Assembly (NCBI GenBank): GCA_002189035.1
Contig: NEEC01000021.1
Coordinates: 744,001 to 808,000, forward strand
DNA: 64,000 nt
Source of the DNA: Utricularia gibba
Lineage: Eukaryota; Plantae; Magnoliophyta
Reading direction: 5' to 3'
This document shows, one piece after another, positions 8,176-48,796 of this stretch. Position 1 is the stretch's first letter; every line of letters begins with the position of its first letter. The position numbers and the translations under genes were made by a program. The notes under the pieces were generated by a model that worked only from the letters and a program-made list of their open reading frames with translations, did not search any database and had not been told where the DNA came from.

Positions 8176-9240
8176 ATGGCGTCAGCCTGTGTGAACAACG
8201 TTGGAGTCGTGGCGCAGGAGGCCTTTCTGGACCGTCAGACGGTGAGTAGTGGCGGCATGTGGCGGATGCCGCCGGCGGAGGAGGTGGTGAATACTACGAG
8301 GCCGCTCGTGGATCTGCGAAAAGATGCGGATCCGGATCCCGATCCGGATGGGGCAGGGATAGAGTTTGAATTTCGTCTTGAAGATTCGGTGTCGTCTATG
8401 CTGCCAGCGGATGAGCTTTTCTCCGACGGGAAACTTGTTCCTCGGCAACTCTCCTCCACCACACGCCCAGCAGCGGAGGTCGTCTCTGCGGTGCCGGACG
8501 TCAGACCGGAGAAGGCTCAGACGCACGGCGGTGATTCAAGGTCAAACTACCGAAAGGCGCCGAGAAGCGTGTGTAGGTGGAAAGAGCTTCTACGATTGAA
8601 GAAACTGAGCATCGCGAAGGAGGATTCGGCGTCGTGTAGTCAAAACGTCGCCGCGAGAGCCTTGGTTCAGCCTTTTCGTTACCGGAGCACCAAATCCGCC
8701 ATGGATTCATATCTCACCCTCCCTCTGTTACAACAGCAGGTCGACCACAACGAACCACTCTCCACCTCCTCCGGACCCTCCCTCGAAGACCGCCCCCGCC
8801 TCTCCGTCGACACCGAAAAACCTATCCGCGCCACCACCAAAGTCCGGCTAGCGAAACCGAGAGCGGTTACGGCCGCCGCCGCAGCGAGTCGTGGTAACCG
8901 TCGTGTACCAGTGGAATGTTCATCGGTGCAAGGCGTCGGTGTCTCCGTCGACAGTCCGCGGATGAATCCATCGGGGAAAATCGTTTTCTACGGATTGGAG
9001 AGAAGTTCGAGCAGTCCGAGCACCTTCAACGGCGGTCCGAGATACAAGCACCGTGGAATGGAGCGTTCGTACTCCCATTCTGCCAATCTTAGAATCGCTC
9101 CCTTCCTGAACGTCCCTGTTCGCTCCCTGCGAGGAGGAAACGCCGCCGCCTCATCCAAATCCTCCGTCTTCGGAATCCAAATATTCTCAGCCTCATCGTC
9201 CTCATCGCAACACAAGAATCCGGTCAAATGCCCTCGCTGA
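8176..9240 (+). CDS. Uncharacterised single-exon Ser/Arg-rich protein (MAKR-related / SR repetitive matrix-like plant family), 354 aa
   Basis: ATG at 8176 gives MASACVNNVG. Family-type blocks are FEFRLEDSVSSMLPADELFSDGKLVP, RWKELL and DSPRMNPSGKIVFYGLERSSSSPSTFNGGPR..GMERSYS. Site II motifs lie upstream (7977-8085). Confidence 0.75.
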   Translation: MASACVNNVGVVAQEAFLDRQTVSSGGMWRMPPAEEVVNTTRPLVDLRKDADPDPDPDGAGIEFEFRLEDSVSSMLPADELFSDGKLVPRQLSSTTRPAAEVVSAVPDVRPEKAQTHGGDSRSNYRKAPRSVCRWKELLRLKKLSIAKEDSASCSQNVAARALVQPFRYRSTKSAMDSYLTLPLLQQQVDHNEPLSTSSGPSLEDRPRLSVDTEKPIRATTKVRLAKPRAVTAAAAASRGNRRVPVECSSVQGVGVSVDSPRMNPSGKIVFYGLERSSSSPSTFNGGPRYKHRGMERSYSHSANLRIAPFLNVPVRSLRGGNAAASSKSSVFGIQIFSASSSSSQHKNPVKCPR

Positions 9241-35305: not shown

Positions 35306-35953
35306 ATCGGAACCTTAAAAATCTCTTGGGCTGCGACTGAATCGTCTCTGCAACAAAGCGAAAAGCCTGTATCAACAACAGAAACAGATCAAGGAGAAAT
35401 CTAATTAACAACATACAATTGAGGAACAGATTAGGGCAGGTTACCCTCCTGAATTGATGTTTGGGAAAGAGGAGAAAGTAGTCTCCATTTTTACCAAAGA
35501 AATATCTAAAACGACGTCGTTACTTGTCACCTATATCAATTTTTTTTTTATTTTTGTAAACAAAAAACTATATATAGTTAATAATTACAAAAGTTAAATA
35601 ATGTCTATATCGTAATTCGTATGTCAGAAACTGCACTCACTTTCTATGATATTATGCGTTTAGCACACTTCATTATCCAACATTCTTACTAAGTTTTCTT
35701 GTGTCACAATTGTTACTTGTTCATAGTTTGATTATAATATGGAATGTCACAAATTACATTATTATTATACGATATTATCTATTATCTAATACATAAATAA
35801 AAACACTTTATTCATAACAAATATAAGTGGTTTAAAATAGGGAAAAGGCATTTCCCTACATCCCACATCGGCAACTAGCCTTATTATTCCGACACCACAC
35901 ACACAGGATTACAGTAGGAAACAAGGAAGTGGACAGCAGTTGCTCGGGTCGAA

Positions 35954-36341
35954 TCAGTTCTCGGGTTCGGCTCGGGGTCCGTAAGCAGTCCGGCAGCAGG
36001 CGCGGCACTGCGGAACCTGCGGTATCAAGACTTGGCGATACCCACAGCATTCCAGGCATCGAGCTCGCCCCATTCCGATGCAGTACCTGTACGGGTAGGT
36101 AGTGCATACGCCCGCCTGATCAAGTCCGTACGCCGGCCCGGATTCCTCTACCCCAACCGTAGCTGCGCAATGGAATGCCGCAGGAGTCATCAGGCAATCG
36201 AGTTCTGCGCATGCTTTAAAACACAGGAAAGAATAAAGAAGACGGCGAGAGCTTCTTACCGGCATCAGTGGATTGGGCGGCGATCAGGAGCGCAGCGACG
36301 AAGAAGAAGAAGAAGAGGATCTTGGAAGAAGAAGACGCCAT
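35954..36341 (-). CDS. Secreted 8-Cys peptide, array copy CRP1, 96 aa
   Basis: Exon 1 36341-36260 encodes MASSSSKILFFFFFVAALLIAAQSTDA. A 97-nt phase-1 GT-AG intron has branch-like CTGAT and acceptor TTGCGCAG. Exon 2 36162-35954 gives ATVGVEESGPAYGLDQAGVCTTYPYRYCIGMGRARCLECCGYRQVLIPQVPQCRACCRTAYGPRAEPEN*. TATA (GTATAAATAG) at about 36415-36424. Confidence 0.85.
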
Positions 36342-37937
36342 GGCTGCTGCTATTGTTGTTGTTCTTGCTCTTCAGAGAAGATTTGCAGTGGTGCATTGGG
36401 CATGCCAGCCTCCGCTATTTATACACAAAACTACCGGCGTTATCGGAATAATCTAAAAGCATGTGTTAACACAATTTCCTGAAGCTTGCAAGTTCAGACA
36501 GGATTTGGAGTACATGAATAGTCACACGTTTTTTTGTTTGACTTTTCTTCATTGGAAAAGTCCATGAAAATCTGCTATACAAAATGGGAAAAAAAGAATA
36601 AATAATTTATTTAGGTGAGTCTTTTAAATTATCTAGAAAACTAAAAAGAAAAGAAGTTATTTTTTGTATTTTCAAACCATTTTTAAGTTTACAAATATTT
36701 ATTTTCTTTATGAAAATAAAAAAAATGATTAGAGAGATAATATGTTAATTTATTTGATAAAGATATTCAATATTTTCTAATGTAATTATCCAAATCATGT
36801 TTGGGGTGACTCTGAAAACGATATTGTTATCAAATAAAGTGGAGCAAATTTAATGAATATTTCAATTTATTTTTATTTAAAAAAACCATCCAAAAATTTT
36901 TTATTATCAAATATGAGGGTTAGTATTTAATTAAATAAAATATTCAATATAATAAAATTTAATATCAAATTAAATCATTTACAATTAATTTTTAACATGT
37001 GTTATGCAGGAGTTTATCCCCACACCATTTTATCCAAAAAATTTATTAAATCTCCCTTCCCAAACTAGGGACATGTATCCTATTTTAACTAAAAGAGGTG
37101 TGCGTTGAAAAGTCGGTCTCACTCCATTGGCCACCACGTGCGACAATTATACGTAATAATTGAATTTAATGTAATGATAAAATTATAAAAATAATATATA
37201 CCTAAGTCGGTCGACTTCAAATTGCGTGCCAAATTGAACTAGTCCTCCATCTATTCCATCCTTATCTGGAGTCAATTATATTCCCTAAAGTAAGTAGATA
37301 TACCTAGTGTTAGAAATATGAACAAGAAAAAATGTTTAAAATGGAAAAATCTCGTATTAACACTTGATTTTATGTACATATAATTTATTTTTGATAAAAA
37401 AACAATTATTGAAGATCAGCCTAAATTCAAATAAACTTAAAGATGACAGAAAACATTAATATTATGTCATGAAGTGATTTTTCAATTAAAAATATTGGGT
37501 TACGGTATTAGATTTTTTATTTTTATTTTTATTTTTTTTTCTAGATTGTGGTCTATTTTTGCATAACCTAGACATTGTATATATATAGTCTACCAGCAAT
37601 CGGAGGCTTAGTGACCTTTTTTGCCCATTAAAAAATCAGTTTATACTTTATACAAGAACATTTAAAATATATATTTTATCAAATGGATGAATCGATCCGA
37701 TGAACCAGTTCATCTAAAATGGTCACAAAATTGGTCCGGGTTATGCATCCGATTTGAAAACATAGTCCGTAATACGTAATAAAAATATTTCATTCATAAT
37801 AATAATAATAAGTGGTTTTAAATAGGGAAAAGGCATTTCCCTACATCCCACATCGGCAACTAGCCTTATTATTCCGACACTACACATAAAGGATTACAGC
37901 AGCAAACATGAAGGGGATAGCAGTTTCTCGGGTCGAA

Positions 37938-38331
37938 TCAGTTCGCGGGTTCGGCTTGGGGTCCGTAAGCAGCCCGGCAGCAGGCGCGGCACTGTGGAAT
38001 CGCCGGTATCAAGACTTGGCGATACCCACAGCATTCCAGGCATCGAGCTCGCCCCATTGCGATGCAGTCGCTGTACGGGTATGTAGTGCATACGCCGCCC
38101 GCCTGATCAAGTCCGTACGCCGGCCCGGATTCCTCTACCATAACCGTAGCTGCGCAATGGCATACCGCAGGAGTCATCAGACAATCGAGGTGTTCGCATG
38201 CTTCATAACACAGGAAAGAATGAAGAAGACGGCGAGAGGTTCTTACCAGCATCAGTGGATTGGGTGGCGATCAGGAGCGCAGCAACGAAGAAGAAGAAGA
38301 GGATCTTGGAAGAAGAAGAAGAAGACACCAT
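37938..38331 (-). CDS. Secreted 8-Cys peptide, array copy CRP2, 98 aa
   Basis: Exon 1 38331-38247 encodes MVSSSSSSKILFFFFVAALLIATQSTDA; intron 97 nt. Exon 2 38149-37938 gives ATVMVEESGPAYGLDQAGGVCTTYPYSDCIAMGRARCLECCGYRQVLIPAIPQCRACCRAAYGPQAEPAN*. Confidence 0.85.
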
Positions 38332-39236
38332 GGCTGCTGCTGCTGCTGCTGCTGTTGTTCTTGCTGTTCAGAGAAGATTTGCAGGGATGCATTGGGCATG
38401 CCAACCTCCGCTATTTATACACAACACTAGCGGCGTTCTCGGAATAATCTAAAGCACGTGTTGACACAATTTCCCGGAGCTTGCAAGTTCAAGACGATTT
38501 GCAGTACATGAATTGTCACACGTTTTTTTTTTTTTGGTGACTTTTCTTCATTGGAAAAGTCCATAAAAATCTGCTCTACAAAATGGGAAAAAAAGAATAC
38601 TAATTTATTTAGGTGAGTTTTTTAAATTATCTAGAAAACTTAAAAGAAAAGAAGTTATTTTTTGTGTTTTCAAACCTAATATTTTTTTTCAATTTAAAAA
38701 TATTTATTTTCTTTATGCAAATAAAAAATGATTAAAGGGACATATATTACTTTATTTTATAAAATATTCAATATTTTCTAATTTAATTATCCAAAGTCAT
38801 GTTTGGGGTGACTCTGAAAAATATATTGTTATAAAAATATATTTTTATAAAATATATTGTTATAAAATATTCAATTTATTTTTATTTTTAAAAAAACCAT
38901 CTTAAAAAATTTTATTATCAAATACTAGTGATTTTGGTATTTAATTAAATAAAGTATTCAATATAATAAAATTTAATATCAAATTAAATCATTTACAATT
39001 AATTTTTATACATTTCATTTTTAACATGTGTTATGCGAAGGAATTTATCCCTCTACCATTTTATCTAAAAGACTTATTAAATCTACCTTTCCAAACGAGG
39101 GAAATGTGTCCTATTTTATCTAAAAAAGTTGTGCATTGAAAACTAGGCCCCACCCCATTGACCACCACGTGCGACAATTAAATGTAATAATTTACTTTAA
39201 TATGAGGATAAAATTATAAAAAAAATAATATATAAC

Positions 39237-39772
39237 TAATGGGGTACAAATATGATATGGTTAATCGTCTATTGAAAAGAAGACAAAAGGTGTTCTGACA
39301 GCGTTAGTCGACAAATCAATATCCGTCATATATTTGATAATAGCAATCATTTTGCACAGTCTGAAAATATGACTGAATTACGACAGAGCAGCCAACGGTT
39401 GTCTGAAAAGTAGGATCACAGTACAAACGCAGAAAACAACAGACATTTACAAAATTAGTAATTCGATCAAATCAACCTATTTTATAAGTATGAGAAATTC
39501 AAAAGATAAGGGGGTTTGACCCTAAGCACTCCTCCAACTTGTATTTTCTCCCCACTCCCATCTAGTAAATATATTTTCCGACGAGTTCCGATAGCTTCGT
39601 AGTTTTTCCGTTCTCCGACGGTTTACATGTTAAAACCCCTCTCTTCTTTCATTTTTGGTTAACATGATCGCACTATTCAAAATATCAAAGCCTTAATCGA
39701 ATATGGCACGCTCGTCCACATCCATAACCCGAAAACCGACCCTCTTTCTAACATCAATTTTCAACCACAACA
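39237..39772 (+). mobile_element. Solo LTR (about 536 bp) inserted upstream of CRP2
   Basis: Absent from the paralogous site upstream of CRP1, where ATACC occurs once (37198-37202). Here the insert is flanked by ATAAC/ATACC, a 5-bp target-site duplication with one mismatch. It starts TAATGG, ends AACA and is homologous to 47470-47997. Confidence 0.65.
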
Positions 39773-40863
39773 ATACCAAAGTCGGTCGACTTCAAATTGC
39801 AGAACTAGTCCATCTATTTTATTTCCTGAAGCGAGGAAATTTTTACTCGTGTTAGATATATGAATAGAAAAATATGATAAAAATGGAAAATTCTCATAAT
39901 AACACTTGATTTTTTATAAATATAAATATATATATAAAAAAAGTAACAACGAGAGATTGATTTTTCGATAGAGGAGAGCAATCTATGAGGGGCGAACATC
40001 TTCTTGAATCTCTGGATTTTTTAGGATTGGATGCTATTCTATAATATTCGACGTTTATAGTAAATCTTGTTCTGTAAGCATTCATAGTTTTAAGAAATAT
40101 TCAAATACTGCAAAAAATTGCACCTATATCCTAATCTATAATAGTGTTTTGGAAAATTTTTAGAATTTATTTTTACTTTTCTGAAAATAAAAATAATTTT
40201 ATTATAGAATATTATTAATTGTAAAAATAATTTTAAAATTTTACTACAAAAAATATTTTTGAAAAAGTAAAAAATAATCTAATTTTACATCTTATTTCTA
40301 TGTTTCACAATTATTTTTGAAAAATAGAAATGTATTTTACATCTTATGTTTTAAACACACCGGTTAACCGTCCAGTGGAAGAAAAAAAACGGGTTGGGTG
40401 ACATGTAAAAATATCAAATCAATCTTATTATTTTTCTTATTTGACTTTGATTTTTTTTTTCATTTTATTTTATTATGGTTATTTTATGTTTATTATTTTT
40501 TATGTTAAAGTTATTTTAACTTTTATTCTTTCATTACGTTCATATATTGGTTTTATTAAAAAATCAATTTATACTTTATACGAGAACATTCAAAATACAT
40601 ATTTTTTTTAACAAACCAATTCATCCAGAATGATCACAAAATTGTTTCGAGTTATGCATCCAATTTGAAAACATAGCTGTTAATACGTAAATAAACATAT
40701 TTTATTCACAATAATAATAACAAGTGGTTTTAAATAGGGGAAATTGCGCTTTCCCTACATCCCACATCGGCAAGAAGCCTTATTATTCCGACACCACACA
40801 GTGACACAGACGCACATTTCGAGTAGGAAACTAGGAAGCAGACGACCAGTTGCTTGGGTCGAA

Positions 40864-41251
40864 TCAGTTCGCGGGTACGGCTCGGGGTCCGTAAGCGGCC
40901 CGGCAGCAGGAGCGGCACTGAGAAACCTGAGTTATCAAGACTTGTCGATTGTTACAGCAGGGCAGGCATCCAGCTCGCCCGCTCGCGATGCAGGAGCTGT
41001 ACGGGGATTCAGTGCATACGCCGCCCGCCTGATCAAGTCCGTACGCCGGCCCGGATTCCTCTACCCCAACCGTAGCTGCCCAATGGCATACCGCAGGCGT
41101 CATCAGACAATCGGGTTGTGAGCATGCTTTATAACGCAGGAAAGAATGAAGAAGGCGGCGAGAGGTTCTTACTGGCATCAGTGGATTGGGCGGCGATCAG
41201 GAGCGCAGCAACGAAGAAGAAGAAGAGGATCTTGGAAGAAGAAGACGCCAT
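40864..41251 (-). CDS. Secreted 8-Cys peptide, array copy CRP3, 96 aa
   Basis: Exon 1 41251-41173 encodes MASSSSKILFFFFVAALLIAAQSTDA; intron 97 nt. Exon 2 41075-40864 gives TTVGVEESGPAYGLDQAGGVCTESPYSSCIASGRAGCLPCCNNRQVLITQVSQCRSCCRAAYGPRAVPAN*. Confidence 0.85.
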
Positions 41252-41750
41252 GGCTGTTGCTGCTGCTGCTGTTGTTCTTGCTGTTCAGAGAAGATGTGCA
41301 GGGATGCATTGGACATGCCAGCTTCCTCTACTTATACACGAAACTAGCGGCGTTCTCGGAATAATCTAAAGCACGTGTTGACGCAATTTCCTGGAGCTTG
41401 CAAGTTCAGAGAAGACTTGGAGTACATGAATTGTCACACGTTTTTTTTTTTTTTTTTTTGTCTTTACTTCATTGGAAAAGTCCATAAGTTATACAAAATG
41501 GGAAAAAAAGAATAATATATTTATCAGATTTTTTTTAAAAAAAGAAGAAGAATAATGTGCTTATTGTTTTTTGAATTTGCAAGGCTAATATATTTTTTTA
41601 AGTTTAGAAAATTTATTTTCTTTTGCAACTTAATGAAAAAACTGACAACCTCGAAAAATGATTAAAGGGGTAATGTGTTGATCCGTTGGATAAAATATTC
41701 AACATTTTGCAGTCAAACCAACTAAAGTTTTATTCCAGATGACTTTTTTT

Positions 41751-42108
41751 GTGTTTGATAGGATAATATAATTAATAATATATTTGAGTTATTTATATTT
41801 AAACAAATATATATTGTGTAGTTAAGATTAAAGTTTGTTTAGTATATAGATTTTAAACATATATGTTTTAACTAATACTGTGTTTGATAGATGTGTTTAA
41901 AACAAATACTTTATAAATTGAGTTGTTTAACAAAAACCACCTAGAATTCCAGTTTTGCAAAAGCTAATTCGAAATGTTTTAAAGTAATTTTGTAAAATAT
42001 TCATGTATTGTTAAATTATTTTATCAAACATACATTGTAATCAATACATATATGTTTAAACATTTAAACCAAACTTACTAAACATTCTCTTATATTGTTA
42101 TCAAATAC
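41751..42108. mobile_element. Degenerate MITE-like element
   Basis: Imperfect terminal inverted repeats GTGTTTGATAGGATAATA and TATTGTTATCAAATAC around an AT-rich core. Confidence 0.4.
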
Positions 42109-42318
42109 CAATGAACCAAAATTGAGTGTTTCTACTTTCTAAAAATTTCGTTAACATCGATTCAATACATTTATATTTTTTAAAAAAATCTCAAAAAATT
42201 TTTATTATCAAATAAAATTAATTTGAATTTATTACAAAAATATTATACATAATAAAATTCAATATTAAATTAAATCGTTAACGGTTACTTATTATACATC
42301 ACATATCATCATTTACAT

Positions 42319-42827
42319 TAGTGTTTTAAAAACCTTGATTCGATCCATGGTTCGACCGAGTCAAATCCCAATCCATGTTTTAATGGATTGGATCCAACTC
42401 TACTTTTTACTTTTAATTTTTTAATTTTTTATTATTTACTTTATGAGAATGATTATAAATAAATATAAAATATATTATAAATATTTGATAATAAATCTTA
42501 ATAATTATATTTTTATATATGTATTTGTATTGAGAATAGAAAATAACCATTTATGTTTAAATTATACATTATTTGAATGAGATATGAAACAATAAATATG
42601 ATTTTGATAAAACTTTTTAATGTAATTGTATAATTATTGAGATACATATTTTTATTTTTTTAATATTTTGATATACTAAACTATGGTTTTATAATTATAT
42701 TCTAATGTTTTAATAAGTATAATTTAAAATTAATGAACCCGATTCAATTCATTTTAAAAAGTATTCAACTCAAAATCAATACAAAAGAACAATTGTTCAA
42801 TGGGTTCAACCCATTTTTAAAACAATT
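42319..42827. mobile_element. Possible non-autonomous hAT-like element
   Basis: TAGTGTTTTAAAAACC at the left and CCATTTTTAAAACAAT at the right, with subterminal AACCC/GGTTC-rich motifs. Target-site duplication not clear. Confidence 0.25.
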
Positions 42828-43269
42828 GTTCACATACAAAAGAATTATTGTACGGTATGCAAAGATGATTGATGGGCATTGCACAATGCTTATTACGTGT
42901 ATGTATATATGGATACTTTAAGAAAGATTCCATAACATCCAATCATTTTAGGAGATATGGAAAGCACATAAAGAACAAAAGATTTAGGGACTAAAGATAT
43001 TTAATACGTCAAAATTTGAGTACTAAATGAGGATTAAGCATATCATTTGTATTAAATATTAATTACTGATTGTGCTTATTTTAATAATAATGAAAATGAA
43101 TGCGGTTCACTGCCCATAGAAATACTTTATTTTAACTTTTAATAATAAGGAAAACGGCATTTTCCCAACATCCCACATCGGCAACTCGCCTTATTATTCC
43201 GACGCCACAGAGTTGACACAGACGCACATTTGGAGCAGGAAACAACAAGGAGCAGTTTCTCGGGTCGAA

Positions 43270-43646
43270 TCAGCTCTCGTCTTCGGGTCCGGGTCCGGGT
43301 GGGGGTCTGCATCTGCGTCGTCTGTATTTGGTGGTGCAGCATGAATGGCACCTGGGATACTGATATATTGAGACGTTTTGTCGGTCGTTACAGCAGTCCA
43401 AGCATCCAGCGCGCTCCCCCTCGCCATGCACGACCTGTACGGGTCTTCCTCGCATGCAAACATATCAAGTCCGGCCGCCGGACCGGATCCCTCTATCCCA
43501 GCCCTACCTGCGCAAGGAGTCAGATAATTCTACAGAAAGAATGAAGACGGCGAGGGCTTCTCACCGGCATCGTCGGATTGGGCGCGGAGGAGGACAGCGG
43601 CGACGGCGACGAGGAAGAAGAGGAGGGTTTGGGAAGAAGAAGCCAT
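43270..43646 (-). pseudogene. Secreted Cys-rich peptide, array copy CRP4; frameshifted as assembled
   Basis: Exon 1 43646-43565 encodes MASSSQTLLFFLVAVAAVLLRAQSDDA; 57-nt GT-AG intron. Exon 2 from 43507 reads GRAGIEGSGPAAGLDMFACEEDPYRSCMARG, then shifts frame at the 5-C run 43416-43420 into ERAGCLDCCNDRQNVSIYQYPRCHSCCTTKYRRRRCRPPPGPGPEDES*. May be intact if the run is a sequencing error. Confidence 0.7.
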
Positions 43647-45053
43647 GTCTTGGATTTGAATGGAAGCTGTTATGTGGTTTTATACAGATACAAGAGAACA
43701 CAGATAAGGCAAATGGAATGAATGTAGTACGGTGGTTTTCATTGTAGAGACGGAAGTTTCCATGTTTCTGCTAGTTTCCATCGCCAAGGCTGGTGTTGAT
43801 CTTGCTGTTCAGACAAGATTTGCAGGGATGAATTGGATTGGATATGGAAACCTTGTTATTTATACAAACTAGCGGTGTTTCGGGAATAATCTAAGGCACG
43901 TGATAAACAACTTCATGTAACTTGAAAGTTGTGACTTGTGAGCACCTTTCTCTTTTTATTTTTATTTCTTTGAATAGTCCATCAAAATCCAAAAAAATGA
44001 GGAAAAAGGAAATGCGTTCAAACATGATATTATCTTAAATATATATTTATATAACCTATTTTTATATCAAATATATTTTGAAAATAAATGAAATAAAATA
44101 TATCATTAATTAAACTAATTTATTATAGGTATCCATAGTGAAATTCAATATTTACAAATCAAATCAACTAAAATTATATTTGAAAAAATTTCTACGTCTA
44201 GAAAATGATTTTGAAATAATTTTGTTATCAAATGCTAATTAATTTTATTCCCAAAGAAACAATGAAGTGAATGAACATATATCTTTTATAAGAGGCTATA
44301 GATAATCAAATTATCATTATTTATTAAAATCAACATGATTTTGATTATGAGCATCACATGGCAAGCACTAGACGTGGGTGGTCCGATTTGGTGCATTACG
44401 AGTTGAATCCACAGAGTCACCATAATAAATTACAACTCAGATGTATATGGATTAATATGTTAGACTCATACCAGTTAACAAGTGATTCGAATCATTACAT
44501 AATTTATATATGTTGATATAAATTGAGGCTAATTTATAATTCTTGGATCCAACTATTTGATAAAAAATACACTTTTTCTTGTCGATGTACTATGAACCTG
44601 CCCCATACCCATAATGTACAATGGGTATGACTCGTATTAGCACTATTTCACAATTATGATTCAATAGAAATTCATAGTTTTTGAGTTTGATTCATTAATA
44701 AAAATTAAATTTAGATACTTATTTTTATTTTGAATTGAACTTGATTAAATTTATTACAAAAGTTGTTTAACCGCAAATTATTAGTAAACCGTAAACATGA
44801 GTTCATCTCGATTTTTAAGAGCTAGTTAGTCAATTATTGAATGATTATATATTAATTTTATATTATTTTCATGTACGGACAGTCGATCACTTAATTTTTT
44901 TGTACTGGCAGGCTGGAATGGTGAATAAGCCATGTTCTCATATCGAAAACATCCAGAGCACAGTGGTGCCAGGTATCGCCTGGCACCTTATTCGTCCATA
45001 CGCAAGACAGCAGCGGTGACAACGGAGGCCGGCAGCTGGAGCTGCCCGGCGAT

Positions 45054-45463
45054 TCAGTTCTCCGGTTCCGATGCGCGTTGGCGAGGACAGCAGACCGCAC
45101 ACTGGACCCTTAACAAGCAGCAATACCCGCAACGCGTGCCCATTGCGATGCAGTATTGGTATCGACTGCAGTAGCTTGCCCTCGCCTGGTCAAGCTTGTT
45201 CCCGGAACCCGATTCCTCTACCCCCACACTCGCTGCGGAAGCCATCAGACACGATTGAATCAATACCCAGTTCGCATTTCATACAATTTGACAGCACAAT
45301 GTGTTTAGGATAATCAACCACTGCTATAACAATGTGGTTCTAACCACACAGAAAAAGGGAAAAAGAGTAAGGGTTTCTTACAGGCATGAGTGGATTGAGC
45401 GGAGAGGAGGAGTGCAGCAACGAATACGCAGAGGAGGAGGATTTTGGAGGAAGCAGAAGCCAT
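45054..45463 (-). CDS. Secreted 8-Cys peptide, array copy CRP5 (divergent, short loops), 86 aa
   Basis: Exon 1 45463-45382 encodes MASASSKILLLCVFVAALLLSAQSTHA; 149-nt intron. Exon 2 45232-45054 gives SSVGVEESGSGNKLDQARASYCSRYQYCIAMGTRCGYCCLLRVQCAVCCPRQRASEPEN*. TATA-like CTATATATAC at about 45520-45529. Confidence 0.82.
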
Positions 45464-45603
45464 GGCTGCTGAATGTTCGCCTTCAGAGAAGATGATGGGC
45501 ATGGATGAGCTGCACTGTGTGTATATATAGAAGCAGAGATGGGCGATTTACTGAATGATTTTTTTGAATCTCAATTATACAAAAAAATATAGATTACAAT
45601 AAA

Positions 45604-46530
45604 AAATAATACTAAAATGGTGTCCTATTTTATCTAAAACAGGTGTGCATTGAAATATGGGCCCCACTCATTGACCCATGACATGTGACAATTAATATAT
45701 GCAATAATTTACATAAAGATGACGATAAATTTTAAAAAAATGATGCATAACTAAATCCATTACAATAAAACATAGATTACAATAAAAAATATTAAATCCA
45801 ATCAATTAATTGTGATCTATAATTTTTTATATTTTTGATTATACCAATTTAATTTTTGGATGTGTTATTGTGTACTTCAAGAGATTTGAACCACGTATTA
45901 ATTAATTAGTGGCGCTAATAAGTTCAGAACACCAGTAGTTATCTCTTTTCTTCTGACTTTTCTTCAATGGAAAAGTCTATCAACAGCGACAAATAATACT
46001 AAAATGGTGTCCTATTTTATCTAAAACAGGTGTGCATTGAAATATGGGCCCCACTCATTGACCCATGACATGTGACAATTAATATATGCAATAATTTACA
46101 TAAAGATGACGATAAATTTTAAAAAAATGATGCATAACTAAATCCATTACAATAAAACATAGATTACAATAAAAAATATTAAATCCAATCAATTAATTGT
46201 GATCTATAATTTTTTATATTTTTGATTATACCAATTTAATTTTTGGATGTGTTATTGTGTACTTCAAGAGATTTGAACCACGTATTAATTAATTAGTGGC
46301 GCTAATAAGTTCAGAACACCAGTAGTTATCTCTTTTCTTCTGACTTTTCTTCAATGGAAAAGTCTATCAACAGCGACAAATAATACTAAAATGGTGTCCT
46401 ATTTTATCTAAAACAGGTGTGCATTGAAATATGGGCCCCACTCATTGACCCATGACATGTGACAATTAATATATGCAATAATTTACATAAAGATGACGAT
46501 AAATTTTAAAAAATGATGCATAACTAAATC
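45604..46530. repeat. Near-perfect tandem repeat, 387-bp unit, about 2.4 copies, in the CRP5 upstream region
   Basis: AAATAATACTAAAATGGTGTCC recurs at 45604, 45991 and 46378. The units are essentially identical; I noticed only a one-A difference near 46510. Confidence 0.95.
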
Positions 46531-47469
46531 GATCAAACTCAAATTGAACTAATACTCCATCTATTCATTATATATATGTATATATATCAAACATAAATAT
46601 CTATATTCTTGTTGTACAATATTATTTTTTGGATATTTCATTTTACGGTATTATGTTTTTTCATTTTAATAAAAATATCTTATACAAAATCAATAGTATT
46701 TTCTCTATTTAAATACATCATCTGCTCGTTTGTAATCAGTATGAGTTACGACATAATACTTTTTATCTTACATTCACTCTCACTAGGTAATAATCTGTTT
46801 TATAATCTTTTTTATTAAACTAATTTCATTTATTTGGTTATTCTAACTAAATCTATGAAACATAAAATTGTAAAAGTATTTTTGTAAAATCCTATTAAAT
46901 ACATTAAATTAATAATAATTACTTATCTAAATGAAAATAATTTAAATATATTTTGGATATAAATGTGTGATCACAATGAAAAACACATGGAATATAGATG
47001 TGGCAATAATTTATTACACAATGGATATTACTAAAAATTAAAAAGTCTACAAAAATATCATTACATATACATACTCTTAACTATTGGAAATCAAATAAAT
47101 ACAAAACGATTCAAGTAATTTGAATATTCATTATCAAAATTATTGAATAAGATACAATTTATAATATACAAACGAGAGAAATTAATATATTTGATAATTA
47201 AAATTGATTCGAGTGCATAGATTTTCTATTCAATGATTTAAAGTTTATATTCGAAATTAAATATATTCATGATTTAAAATTTTAACAATTATTATTAACC
47301 AACTCAATTTCATTTATTCATTCAAAGACAGCATTTTCATTCATCCGGTATAATTGGCACGATGCGATTCGAGACTCAAATTTTCACGTGAACTTGATTT
47401 ATGAAAGACAATGAGACCTTGTTTGATATGAAAGTATAAGATGAGTTTAATAAAATTATGTTATTTGGT

Positions 47470-47997
47470 TGATGGAATACAAATTGGATATAATCAACTG
47501 ATCTCTAAAAAGCTGTCAAAAGAAATTTTGAAGGGATAATGACGTTCAATAGACTGATATTTGTCAAAAATCTAACAGATATCGCCGCATGGCACAGTTT
47601 GAAAAGTGGCTGAATTACGGTATGACAGACGACTAATATCTGAAAAACAAGATCGCATAGCAGGGGGACAAGGCAACCAATGTTTGCAGACACCAAGATT
47701 CGGTTAGGTCGTAATCTTCTATAAGTAAAAGAAACCATAACAGAGAGTTGGTTGGATTAAATAGATTTTTTCAATCTGTATTCTCTTCTTTACGACCTCC
47801 ATTTAGTGAAACTTTTTTCCGGTGAGCTCCGGCAGTTCCGTAGTTTTTTCACTTTCCGGCGGTTTCCACGTAAAAAATCTTTGTTCATTCTTATTTCAAT
47901 CGAACCAATCATGAAGAATGTGACTAAGTGTGACATTTCCAATCGCATCTATCATCTTAAATCGAACTCCCACCAGATACCGATTTCACCCATAACA
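47470..47997 (+). mobile_element. Second, diverged solo LTR of the same family as 39237-39772
   Basis: Starts TGATGG..TACAAAT and ends TTTCACCCATAACA. Shares internal blocks CACAGT.TGAAAA..CTGAATTACG and TTTTCCG..GAG.TCCG..AG.T.CGTAGTTTTT with the first copy. Flanks TTGGT/TTTGA match only 3 of 5. Confidence 0.55.
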
Positions 47998-48089
47998 TTT
48001 GATATGTAGATATAATTATATCAATTATATGAGTATAATAATGATTATACCCATAAAGTGGAATAGTTAAATAGTAAAAGAAAAATAGT

Positions 48090-48250
48090 ATGTTTGGTAG
48101 GTAGAATAAATTATAATTAGGATAATTTATTCTATGAATATGAGATAAAATAATAAAAGAAAATGAATTAAAATAAAATTATACTGTCATATATCCCTTT
48201 TTATATATCTTATATTATGTATGGTATAATTTATTCATGTATCAAACACA
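48090..48250. mobile_element. Degenerate Tourist-like MITE
   Basis: Imperfect inverted ends TATGTTTGGTAGGTAGAATAA and TTATTCATGTATCAAACACA. Confidence 0.4.
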
Positions 48251-48463
48251 TTCATATAATATATTTATATATATGTATTTGTATACTCAAGGGGAGGTAT
48301 GATTATTGTTATACCTATATACTTAGATTTATTTAAATCCAAATAATTTAAAACTATCAATATTTAAATCCACCAACTAAACAAAACATAAAAAGCTCTC
48401 TAAAGTGGTAAAAAAGAGGGAGGCAGCATGTTGGTTTATTTGAAGTAAGAGAGGAGCGGAGGG

Positions 48464-48796
48464 CTAGTTGAGGCGGCAGCATCCTTGGCAGGTTCTGGCG
48501 TCTTAAGGCGGGGAGATGGAGCCGCAGCAGGCGACGAACCGGAGGTAGCTGTTGCCGCTCCTGCACCTGCTCCTGAACCCACGGCAGTCGCCGGACTGCG
48601 CCGGCTGGTAGTGGCTGCCATCGGATGATGAGCCCCCGGCGGCTTCTGCTGCTGAAACAAAACCAGAGAGAAATGCTTTGCATCTGTTCATCAAAGTGGT
48701 AGAACCAGAAAGAGGGGTCTTACCGGAAATGACGAGCAGGAAGAAGAAGAAGAAGAAGAAGAAGAAAGCCATCAGTGTTCTTGAAGAAGAAGCCAT
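48464..48796 (-). pseudogene. Most divergent array member CRP6, with an in-frame premature stop
   Basis: Exon 1 48796-48724 encodes MASSSRTLMAFFFFFFFFFLLVIS; 72-nt phase-1 intron. Exon 2 reads AAEAAGGSSSDGSHYQPAQSGDCRGFRSRCRSGNSYLRFVACCGSISPP*DARTCQGCCRLN*. The second CxxCC lies in frame beyond TAA (48503-48505). Confidence 0.7.

Follow-up and report, generated by a model that had tools for sequence, protein, structure and literature searches.

The window analysed here is a stretch of 64,000 nucleotides of the Utricularia gibba genome (GenBank assembly GCA_002189035.1, contig NEEC01000021.1, positions 744,001 to 808,000), and all coordinates below refer to it. On its minus strand, between 35954 and 48796, lie six loci for small cysteine-rich peptides (CRP1 to CRP6), all in the same orientation and flanked by a CWC15 gene (first exon 35305-35174; Pfam PF04889, E 1.2e-12) and by a gene with an HMA domain (49907 onward; Pfam PF00403, E 3.2e-11). 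Exon 1 of every locus is 72-85 nt long, encodes a hydrophobic signal peptide of the MAS... type and stops one base into a codon (phase 1) at a GTAAGA or GTGAGA donor. The introns are canonical GT..AG introns in phase 1 that end in CAG and measure 97, 97, 97, 57, 149 and 72 nt from CRP1 to CRP6, and their position is exactly that of the predicted signal-peptide cleavage site. The signal peptide and phase-1 intron that a first-pass annotation, made from the sequence alone, had described for each locus are borne out by these gene models and their GT..AG sites. The same annotation counted six two-exon genes; the six minus-strand loci and their two flanking genes are there, but only four of the six are intact, since CRP4 is frameshifted and CRP6 is interrupted by a TAA codon. 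Four genes of the cluster are intact, one copy is frameshifted, and the sixth is a doubtful, interrupted relative.

The first three intact genes share one cysteine framework. CRP1 (35954-36341, minus strand; exon 1 36341-36260, a 97-nt phase-1 intron at 36259-36163, exon 2 36162-35954 including the stop) encodes a precursor of 96 amino acids with eight cysteines spaced C-x7-C-x7-CxxCC-x12-CxxCC and a C-terminal EPEN. The same spacing is found in CRP2 (37938-38331; exon 1 38331-38247, intron of 97 nt, exon 2 38149-37938), whose precursor of 98 amino acids ends in EPAN and whose exon 2 shares 94% identity with CRP1 exon 2, and in CRP3 (40864-41251; exon 1 41251-41173, 79 nt, intron of 97 nt, exon 2 41075-40864), with a precursor of 96 amino acids ending in VPAN. 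CRP5 (45054-45463; exon 1 45463-45382, intron of 149 nt, exon 2 45232-45054) is intact and divergent; its precursor of 86 amino acids has the spacing C-x5-C-x6-CxxCC-x5-CxxCC and again ends in EPEN. The signal peptides of these four genes end in ...STDA or ...STHA and are followed by an acidic pro-segment, (T/S)V.VEESG....LDQA, with a net charge of -3 in CRP1-3 and -1 in CRP5, while the cysteine domain carries +2 to +4. A tail of 10-12 residues follows the cysteine core and closes in [EV]PxN. The intact copies have kept their splice sites, the position of the stop and the EPxN end. Both the cysteine spacings and the V.VEESG..LDQA pro-segment given by the first-pass annotation for CRP1-3 and CRP5 agree with these translations.

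Promoter-like and 3′-end signals accompany the coding regions. In CRP1, CRP2 and CRP5 the ATG is preceded by a TATA box at a distance of 66-88 nt, and CRP3 has a mutated TATAAGT in the same place; the CRP1 box is TATAAAT at 36423-36417. Repeat analysis placed this box in a promoter/5′ untranslated region (UTR) block (36352-36495, minus strand) with homologous blocks upstream of CRP2 and CRP3. Downstream, AATAAT or AATAAG hexamers occur 62-77 nt past the stops of CRP1-5 (AATAAT 66 nt past the stop in CRP1), and a 3′ UTR block on the minus strand with an AATAAT poly(A)-like signal is common to CRP1-4 (35834-35903, 37819-37888, 40733-40802 and 43144-43213, respectively). Just upstream of CRP5 lies a tandem repeat with a unit of 387 nt (45604-46677), in which the copies 45604-45903 and 45991-46290 are identical and a third copy has 65% identity; the repeat also doubles a short open reading frame (ORF; 45692-45805 and 46079-46192).

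CRP4 and CRP6, which had been listed as family genes like the rest, are damaged. In CRP4 (43270-43646, minus strand; exon 1 43646-43565, intron of 57 nt, exon 2 from 43507), the frame read from the conserved acceptor spans the pro-segment and Cys1-Cys2 and is then lost, as a GC-rich run separating Cys2 from Cys3 carries 2 extra nt near 43416 (a +2 insertion), so that the Cys1-Cys2 half and the CxxCC...CxxCC half lie in different frames. The match of a family hidden Markov model (HMM) to CRP4 is split between two frames, one for positions 3-34 (E 1.8e-05) and the other for positions 33-63 (E 3.8e-06). The old frame runs without interruption to the conserved stop; it ends in EDES at 43270 and carries a 27-nt in-frame insertion that adds a ninth cysteine. 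The frameshift could be either a real mutation or an assembly error. An alternative acceptor, TGCGAG/G, which would put the CxxCC half in frame, was rejected as the main model because it drops Cys1-2, differs from the conserved site and is preceded by a poor polypyrimidine tract. In CRP4, compared with CRP1-3, about 140 nt more separate the ATG from the promoter/5′ UTR block (43789-43836), which shares 92% identity with the block of CRP2, and a separate TATAAAA lies 38 nt upstream of the ATG, within 43647-43836; this arrangement points to an insertion and perhaps to a new promoter.

In CRP6 (48464-48796, minus strand; exon 1 48796-48724, intron of 72 nt, exon 2 from 48651), an in-frame TAA at 48505-48503 separates "...FVACCGSISPP" from "DARTCQGCCRLN", and a second stop lies at 48466-48464. 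Four cysteines precede the TAA and a CxxCC motif follows it, and Phe replaces one cysteine of the first CxxCC (FVACC). Since the in-frame TAA precedes the last CxxCC, the RLN end of CRP6 is reached only by read-through, and the earlier statement that five of the six peptides end in Asn is true for four (CRP1, CRP2, CRP3 and CRP5). A second intron removing the TAA was rejected, as there is no GT between the CC and the stop. When exon 2 of CRP6, with an X at the stop, was scored against the CRP profile, it did not rise above shuffles (925 of 3000 decoys scored at least as high), and its likeness to the other CRPs is confined to the layout and the start of exon 1.

Transcription was assessed with an index of 31-nt words, which gives the share of the words of a stretch that is held by each sequencing run. 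The CRP1 coding stretch (388 nt with the intron) had a share of 1.00 in the presumed source DNA run and of at most 0.58 across 15 RNA-labelled runs from five studies with four organism labels; the ceiling for a CRP1 transcript minus its 97-nt intron is 231 of 358 words, or 0.645. On a 9.7-kb stretch covering CRP1-5, RNA runs had shares of 0.08-0.17, which is roughly the exonic share. These values indicate, indirectly, that the CRP genes are transcribed, and the 0.58 of CRP1 falls just below the ceiling for a spliced transcript.

The copies CRP1-3 are about equally similar in exon 2 (86-94% identity), in the intron (87-91%) and in the 300 nt upstream (85-92%), which points to units of about 2 kb that were duplicated recently. 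The local expansion of a secreted cysteine-rich family foreseen in the first-pass annotation is in keeping with these tandem, recently duplicated copies. Among CRP1-3, the pairwise ratio of nonsynonymous to synonymous divergence (omega) is 1.06-1.27 at a synonymous divergence (dS) of 0.10-0.14. From Cys1 to Cys8, 15 of 30 non-cysteine columns vary among the three and none of the eight cysteine columns does; under random placement of the changes, this invariance has P = 0.01, or 4e-04 with CRP5 included. In the pro-segment, one of 18 columns varies. CRP5 compared with CRP1-3 has an omega of 0.27-0.43 and an exon 1 identity of 79-82%; the introns and promoters of the two groups can no longer be aligned (45-54% identity), and the exons alone still align. 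The low omega against CRP5, the exon-only conservation and the uneven distribution of changes are what would be expected of a coding gene whose disulfide framework is fixed and whose loops change fast. An array of recently duplicated orphan ORFs that is decaying under relaxed constraint, with no present function, would account for the two broken copies among six, for an omega of about 1 among CRP1-3 and for an exon divergence equal to that of introns and promoters. This explanation is improbable, because the omega of 0.27-0.43 and the exon-only conservation between CRP5 and CRP1-3 speak against it, as do the unchanged cysteine columns next to loops in which half of the columns have changed, the retained splice sites, stop position and EPxN end, and the presence of a transcript signal.

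We found no detectable relatives of the CRPs. Pfam searches at E up to 10 with exon 1, exon 2 and the spliced CRP1 precursor gave chance matches only, a word-indexed search of 5.8 billion protein clusters with CRP1 exon 2 gave no candidate, a HMMER search of 1.84 billion representative proteins with the CRP profile gave no true homologue, and a profile search of the PDB sequences gave no CRP match. The sole HMMER match (P0001) was rejected as a repetitive junk ORF that matched 23 positions five times, and a feature search of the ESM Atlas, with a top score of 0.68 to bacterial hypothetical proteins, was likewise set aside. Nothing relevant was found in the literature on CXXCC peptides and on Utricularia cysteine-rich peptides. 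In line with what had been proposed from their spacing, the peptides have no match to the Pfam models of the defensin, thionin, lipid transfer protein (LTP), snakin, hevein and RALF families, the PDB profile search was empty, and their spacing does not fit the frameworks common among plant cysteine-rich peptides. As far as these sequence comparisons reach, the CRPs are a new orphan family, and their cysteine framework is new among the tandemly expanded cysteine-rich peptides familiar from plants.

Structure prediction was of limited help. The AlphaFold2 models are of low confidence, with a predicted local distance difference test score (pLDDT) of 63 for CRP1 exon 2 and 58 for the CRP5 core, and in them both CxxCC motifs are helical. 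Foldseek searches of the PDB and of the AFDB clusters gave no match for the models. A shape search of the Atlas returned fragments of large helical proteins at a template-modelling score (TM) of at most 0.50, which were rejected, and a wide VIA-align search with the CRP model gave a best Z of 3.2, which is not meaningful. The Euplotes pheromones Er-22 and Er-11 (Z 3.0 and 2.4), which are small disulfide-stapled three-helix bundles, offer an analogy only. The CxxCC motifs, a cluster of four-helix copper-storage proteins that the model weakly resembles in shape (TM 0.40) and the HMA-domain gene next door might suggest that the cysteine domain binds metal ions, in the manner of metallothioneins or copper-storage proteins, and forms no disulfides. 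We consider this very improbable: the signal peptide would route the CRPs into the oxidising secretory pathway, the conserved number of cysteines is even, a TM of 0.40 from a low-confidence model is below any meaningful threshold, and adjacency to an HMA gene is not evidence.

The first-pass annotation regarded the CRPs as an offshoot of the fold of class II glycine-rich proteins (GRPs) and also pointed to the beta-ginkgotides. The likeness in cysteine spacing is real. Beta-gB1, YETGCKRCCYLDEYGCIRCC, has the framework C-x2-CC-x6-C-x2-CC, with disulfides I-IV, II-VI and III-V and no regular secondary structure (PMC5522442). The GRP3 proteins that we retrieved from the database and used for all comparisons, each of which carries PF07172, end in C-x3-CC-Y..(Y)G-C-x-R-CC-SYAGEAVQTQPGH, that is, a C-x3-CC-x6-C-x2-CC spacing followed by a tail of 13 residues. 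The last six cysteines of the four intact CRPs match loops 1 and 3 of the beta-ginkgotides, with two residues each; loop 2 has 12 or 5 residues (GYRQVLIPQVPQ or LLRVQ) compared with six in the beta-ginkgotides, and two extra cysteines precede the core. Like the CRPs, beta-ginkgotides have two CxxCC motifs and a short precursor made up of signal peptide, pro-peptide, cysteine core and tail, with no glycine-rich tract, and the mean length of their tail is 11 residues (PMC5522442), close to that in the CRPs. The CRPs differ from them in having eight cysteines instead of six, with an extra N-terminal C-x5/7-C pair, and in models that are helical, at low confidence, where beta-ginkgotides lack regular structure. 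Class II GRPs (AtGRP3, AtGRP3S, NtTLRP and CpGRP1) resemble the CRPs in being secreted, in a C-terminal module where a tail of about 13 residues comes after two C-x(2-3)-CC motifs and in having an acidic N-terminal segment that ends in DQ. They are defined by [GG(X)3GG]n repeats that lie between signal peptide and cysteine domain (PMC5852109), and the CRPs differ from them in the lack of glycine repeats, in a first motif that is C-x2-CC and not C-x3-CC, and in the two extra cysteines. Class II GRPs are described as binding the WAK1 ectodomain through their cysteine-rich domain (PMC4777284).

Descent from this lineage would make the CRPs diverged relatives of class II GRPs and beta-ginkgotides that lost the glycine repeats and gained an N-terminal cysteine pair, and they could then be wall-bound WAK ligands. 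Apart from the cysteine spacing and a GRP3 tail of similar length, the gene structure of AtGRP3 favours this explanation, since its exon 1 of 79 nt and its phase-1 intron, which splits an Ala codon followed by "TV", are the same as in CRP3. In a GRP3-like gene of Aristolochia, however, the intron lies 12 codons further on, so that the intron position is not fixed in the GRP3 family, and many genes for small secreted peptides have a phase-1 intron behind the signal peptide. The annotated product of this Aristolochia californica gene (L002 1501-2055) omits an in-frame part of the glycine-rich repeat, and the omission may reflect an "intron" inside the repeat that was made by the annotation.

Residues outside the cysteines and profile comparisons gave no significant support for kinship. 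The loop-2 residues Tyr10, Leu11, Asp12, Glu13 and Gly15 of the beta-ginkgotides (Y-L-D-E-x-G) are not in the CRPs, nor are the GRP3 signatures CCY..G and SYAGEAVQ, and the CRP precursors contain neither [GG(X)3GG]n nor other glycine repeats. The comparison with PF07172 that had been suggested was run at E up to 10 on CRP exon 1, exon 2 and the spliced CRP1 precursor and returned no match. An HMM of 24 GRP3 C-terminal domains, run against the ORFs of the window, did not place the CRP ORFs above random ORFs. The alignment of the CRPs with the GRP3 proteins in hhalign had a probability of 11.6% over 7 columns. Against composition-matched shuffles, the HMM of the mature GRP3 protein gave p values of 0.35-0.69 on the CRPs, that of the GRP3 cysteine domain 0.04-0.10 for CRP1-3 and 0.85 for CRP5, and that of the GRP3 pro-segment about 0.5. 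BLASTP of the full CRP1 and CRP5 precursors against GRP3S gave E 2.0 and 2.4, respectively. With a beta-ginkgotide-like precursor from Abies, CRP5 shared 8 of 18 residues, almost all of them cysteines (E 0.53), and hhalign placed the whole six-cysteine core in register with this precursor at a probability of 4.6%.

As a positive control, BLASTP of GRP3S (P0010, from Cardamine) against the Abies lasiocarpa precursor (PMC5522442, Table S6) gave E 7e-07, with 37% identity over 75 residues; the two have in common a MASKA..L signal peptide and CCY..GC..CC. Beta-ginkgotides have been reported from gymnosperms only and as absent in angiosperms (PMC5522442). The control match indicates that this gymnosperm scaffold has angiosperm homologues with a glycine-rich insert, and the existence of glycine-free gymnosperm members that are demonstrably related to GRP3, like the register of the six-cysteine core with the Abies precursor, counts in favour of a CRP origin in the GRP3/beta-ginkgotide lineage. 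Since the control was positive and the CRP tests were not significant, homology inside the GRP3/beta-ginkgotide lineage is detectable across seed plants and the CRPs are not detectably members. The view that the CRPs are an offshoot of the class II GRP fold is at odds with the hhalign probability, the shuffle-level HMM scores and the gap between the BLASTP values and that of the control. We therefore treat descent from the GRP3/beta-ginkgotide lineage as a lead and not a finding, and regard it as unlikely on the sequence evidence. A more specific version, in which the CRPs would be the first angiosperm eight-cysteine derivatives of the GRP3/beta-ginkgotide module, with an added N-terminal loop closed by a disulfide, and would have expanded in a carnivorous lineage into a diversifying set of secreted effectors, for example in trap fluid, is quite unlikely.

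Other known peptide families resemble the CRPs in part. The alpha-hairpinin motif is C1-X3-C2-Xn-C3-X3-C4, in which X is not cysteine, with four cysteines and a helix-loop-helix fold (PMC7191063). The first and last cysteines of each CxxCC have the same C-x3-C spacing, the peptides of both families are cationic, and the motifs are helical in the AlphaFold2 models of the CRPs. The inner loop has 12 residues in CRP1-3 compared with 13 in the alpha-hairpinin EcAMP1, and only 5 in CRP5. Unlike alpha-hairpinins, the CRPs have a cysteine inside each X3 and eight cysteines in all, and no fold match was found (best Z 3.2); the CRP sequences depart from the alpha-hairpinin motif, and the resemblance to this family is putative. 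The DEFL, NCR, SCR and LCR families share with the CRPs a signal-peptide exon followed by a phase-1 intron, the two-exon structure, tandem expansion, frequent pseudogenes, and invariant cysteines with hypervariable loops. The CRPs differ from these families in their cysteine framework and have no CS-alpha/beta signature and no Pfam matches.

We favour, with moderate confidence, the reading that the CRP genes form a young tandem array and encode small, secreted, disulfide-rich peptides, probably defensive. The precursor would enter the endoplasmic reticulum, where the 27-residue signal peptide would be cut off and the eight cysteines would pair into four disulfides. One candidate topology is an N-terminal C-C loop added to a six-cysteine core of the beta-ginkgotide type; the other is a hairpinin-like ladder of C-x3-C / C-x3-C in which the two extra cysteines tie down the N-terminal arm. 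The acidic pro-segment, and perhaps the tail too, would be trimmed away, and a cationic peptide of about 39-51 residues would be secreted outside the cell, where its hypervariable inter-cysteine loops may contact an external target. By analogy with other plant peptides, a role in host defence (antimicrobial or anti-feeding) ranks first among the functions, with about an even chance of being correct.

Ranked second, and unlikely, is a role as extracellular signalling ligands in developmental or reproductive recognition that would be read by receptor kinases. Ligand families such as SCR/SP11 and the LUREs also combine tandem expansion, conserved cysteines and hypervariable loops with an omega of 1 or more, and the conserved pro-segment of the CRPs suggests regulated processing. 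Against signalling, words of CRP1 occur in many RNA runs from the five studies, which suggests broad rather than narrowly reproductive expression, and a cationic cysteine domain paired with an acidic pro-segment is more typical of antimicrobial peptides.

Several points weigh against the reading of the array as secreted, probably defensive peptide genes. An omega near 1 among CRP1-3 is also expected from relaxed constraint, and for these three copies the cysteine-invariance test reaches no better than P = 0.01. The types of the sequencing runs are guesses of the index ("RNA?"), and the transcript signal consists of word shares, not of junction reads. The structure models are of low confidence, and the function is drawn from the general properties of plant cysteine-rich peptides. 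Finding no homologue is also weaker than it sounds, because the proteome of the organism itself is absent from the libraries and small peptide genes are often unannotated, so that unannotated relatives of the CRPs could exist.

Other features of the window stand apart from the peptide genes. Plus-strand ORFs of 125-179 amino acids lie antisense to the CRP genes (37908-38447, 179 amino acids; 36032-36451; 40744-41121). They were rejected as genes, as they cross the minus-strand intron and differ in length among the copies, and they look like by-products of GC-rich coding sequence. At 8176-9237 on the plus strand, a single-exon gene encodes a serine-rich protein of about 354 amino acids whose closest database relative, at 46% identity, comes from Genlisea aurea, with other Lamiales next in rank; a best match of 46% suggests a fast-evolving Lentibulariaceae genome.

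Plants have hundreds of small, poorly annotated cysteine-rich peptide genes, and the CRPs sit in the compact genome of a member of the Lentibulariaceae, in which a link has been drawn between tandem duplicates and carnivory. Since orphan clusters of cysteine-rich peptide genes are common in plants, the biological stakes are moderate, and the CRP cluster adds only modestly to a kind of plant gene that is well known. The cysteine pattern of the CRPs is not one described for angiosperm peptides, and any new cysteine framework is a potential antimicrobial or signalling scaffold. If the CRP peptides are produced, they would provide a compact scaffold with four disulfides and a test of whether the CxxCC...CxxCC module, as found in GRP3 and the beta-ginkgotides, arose once or repeatedly.

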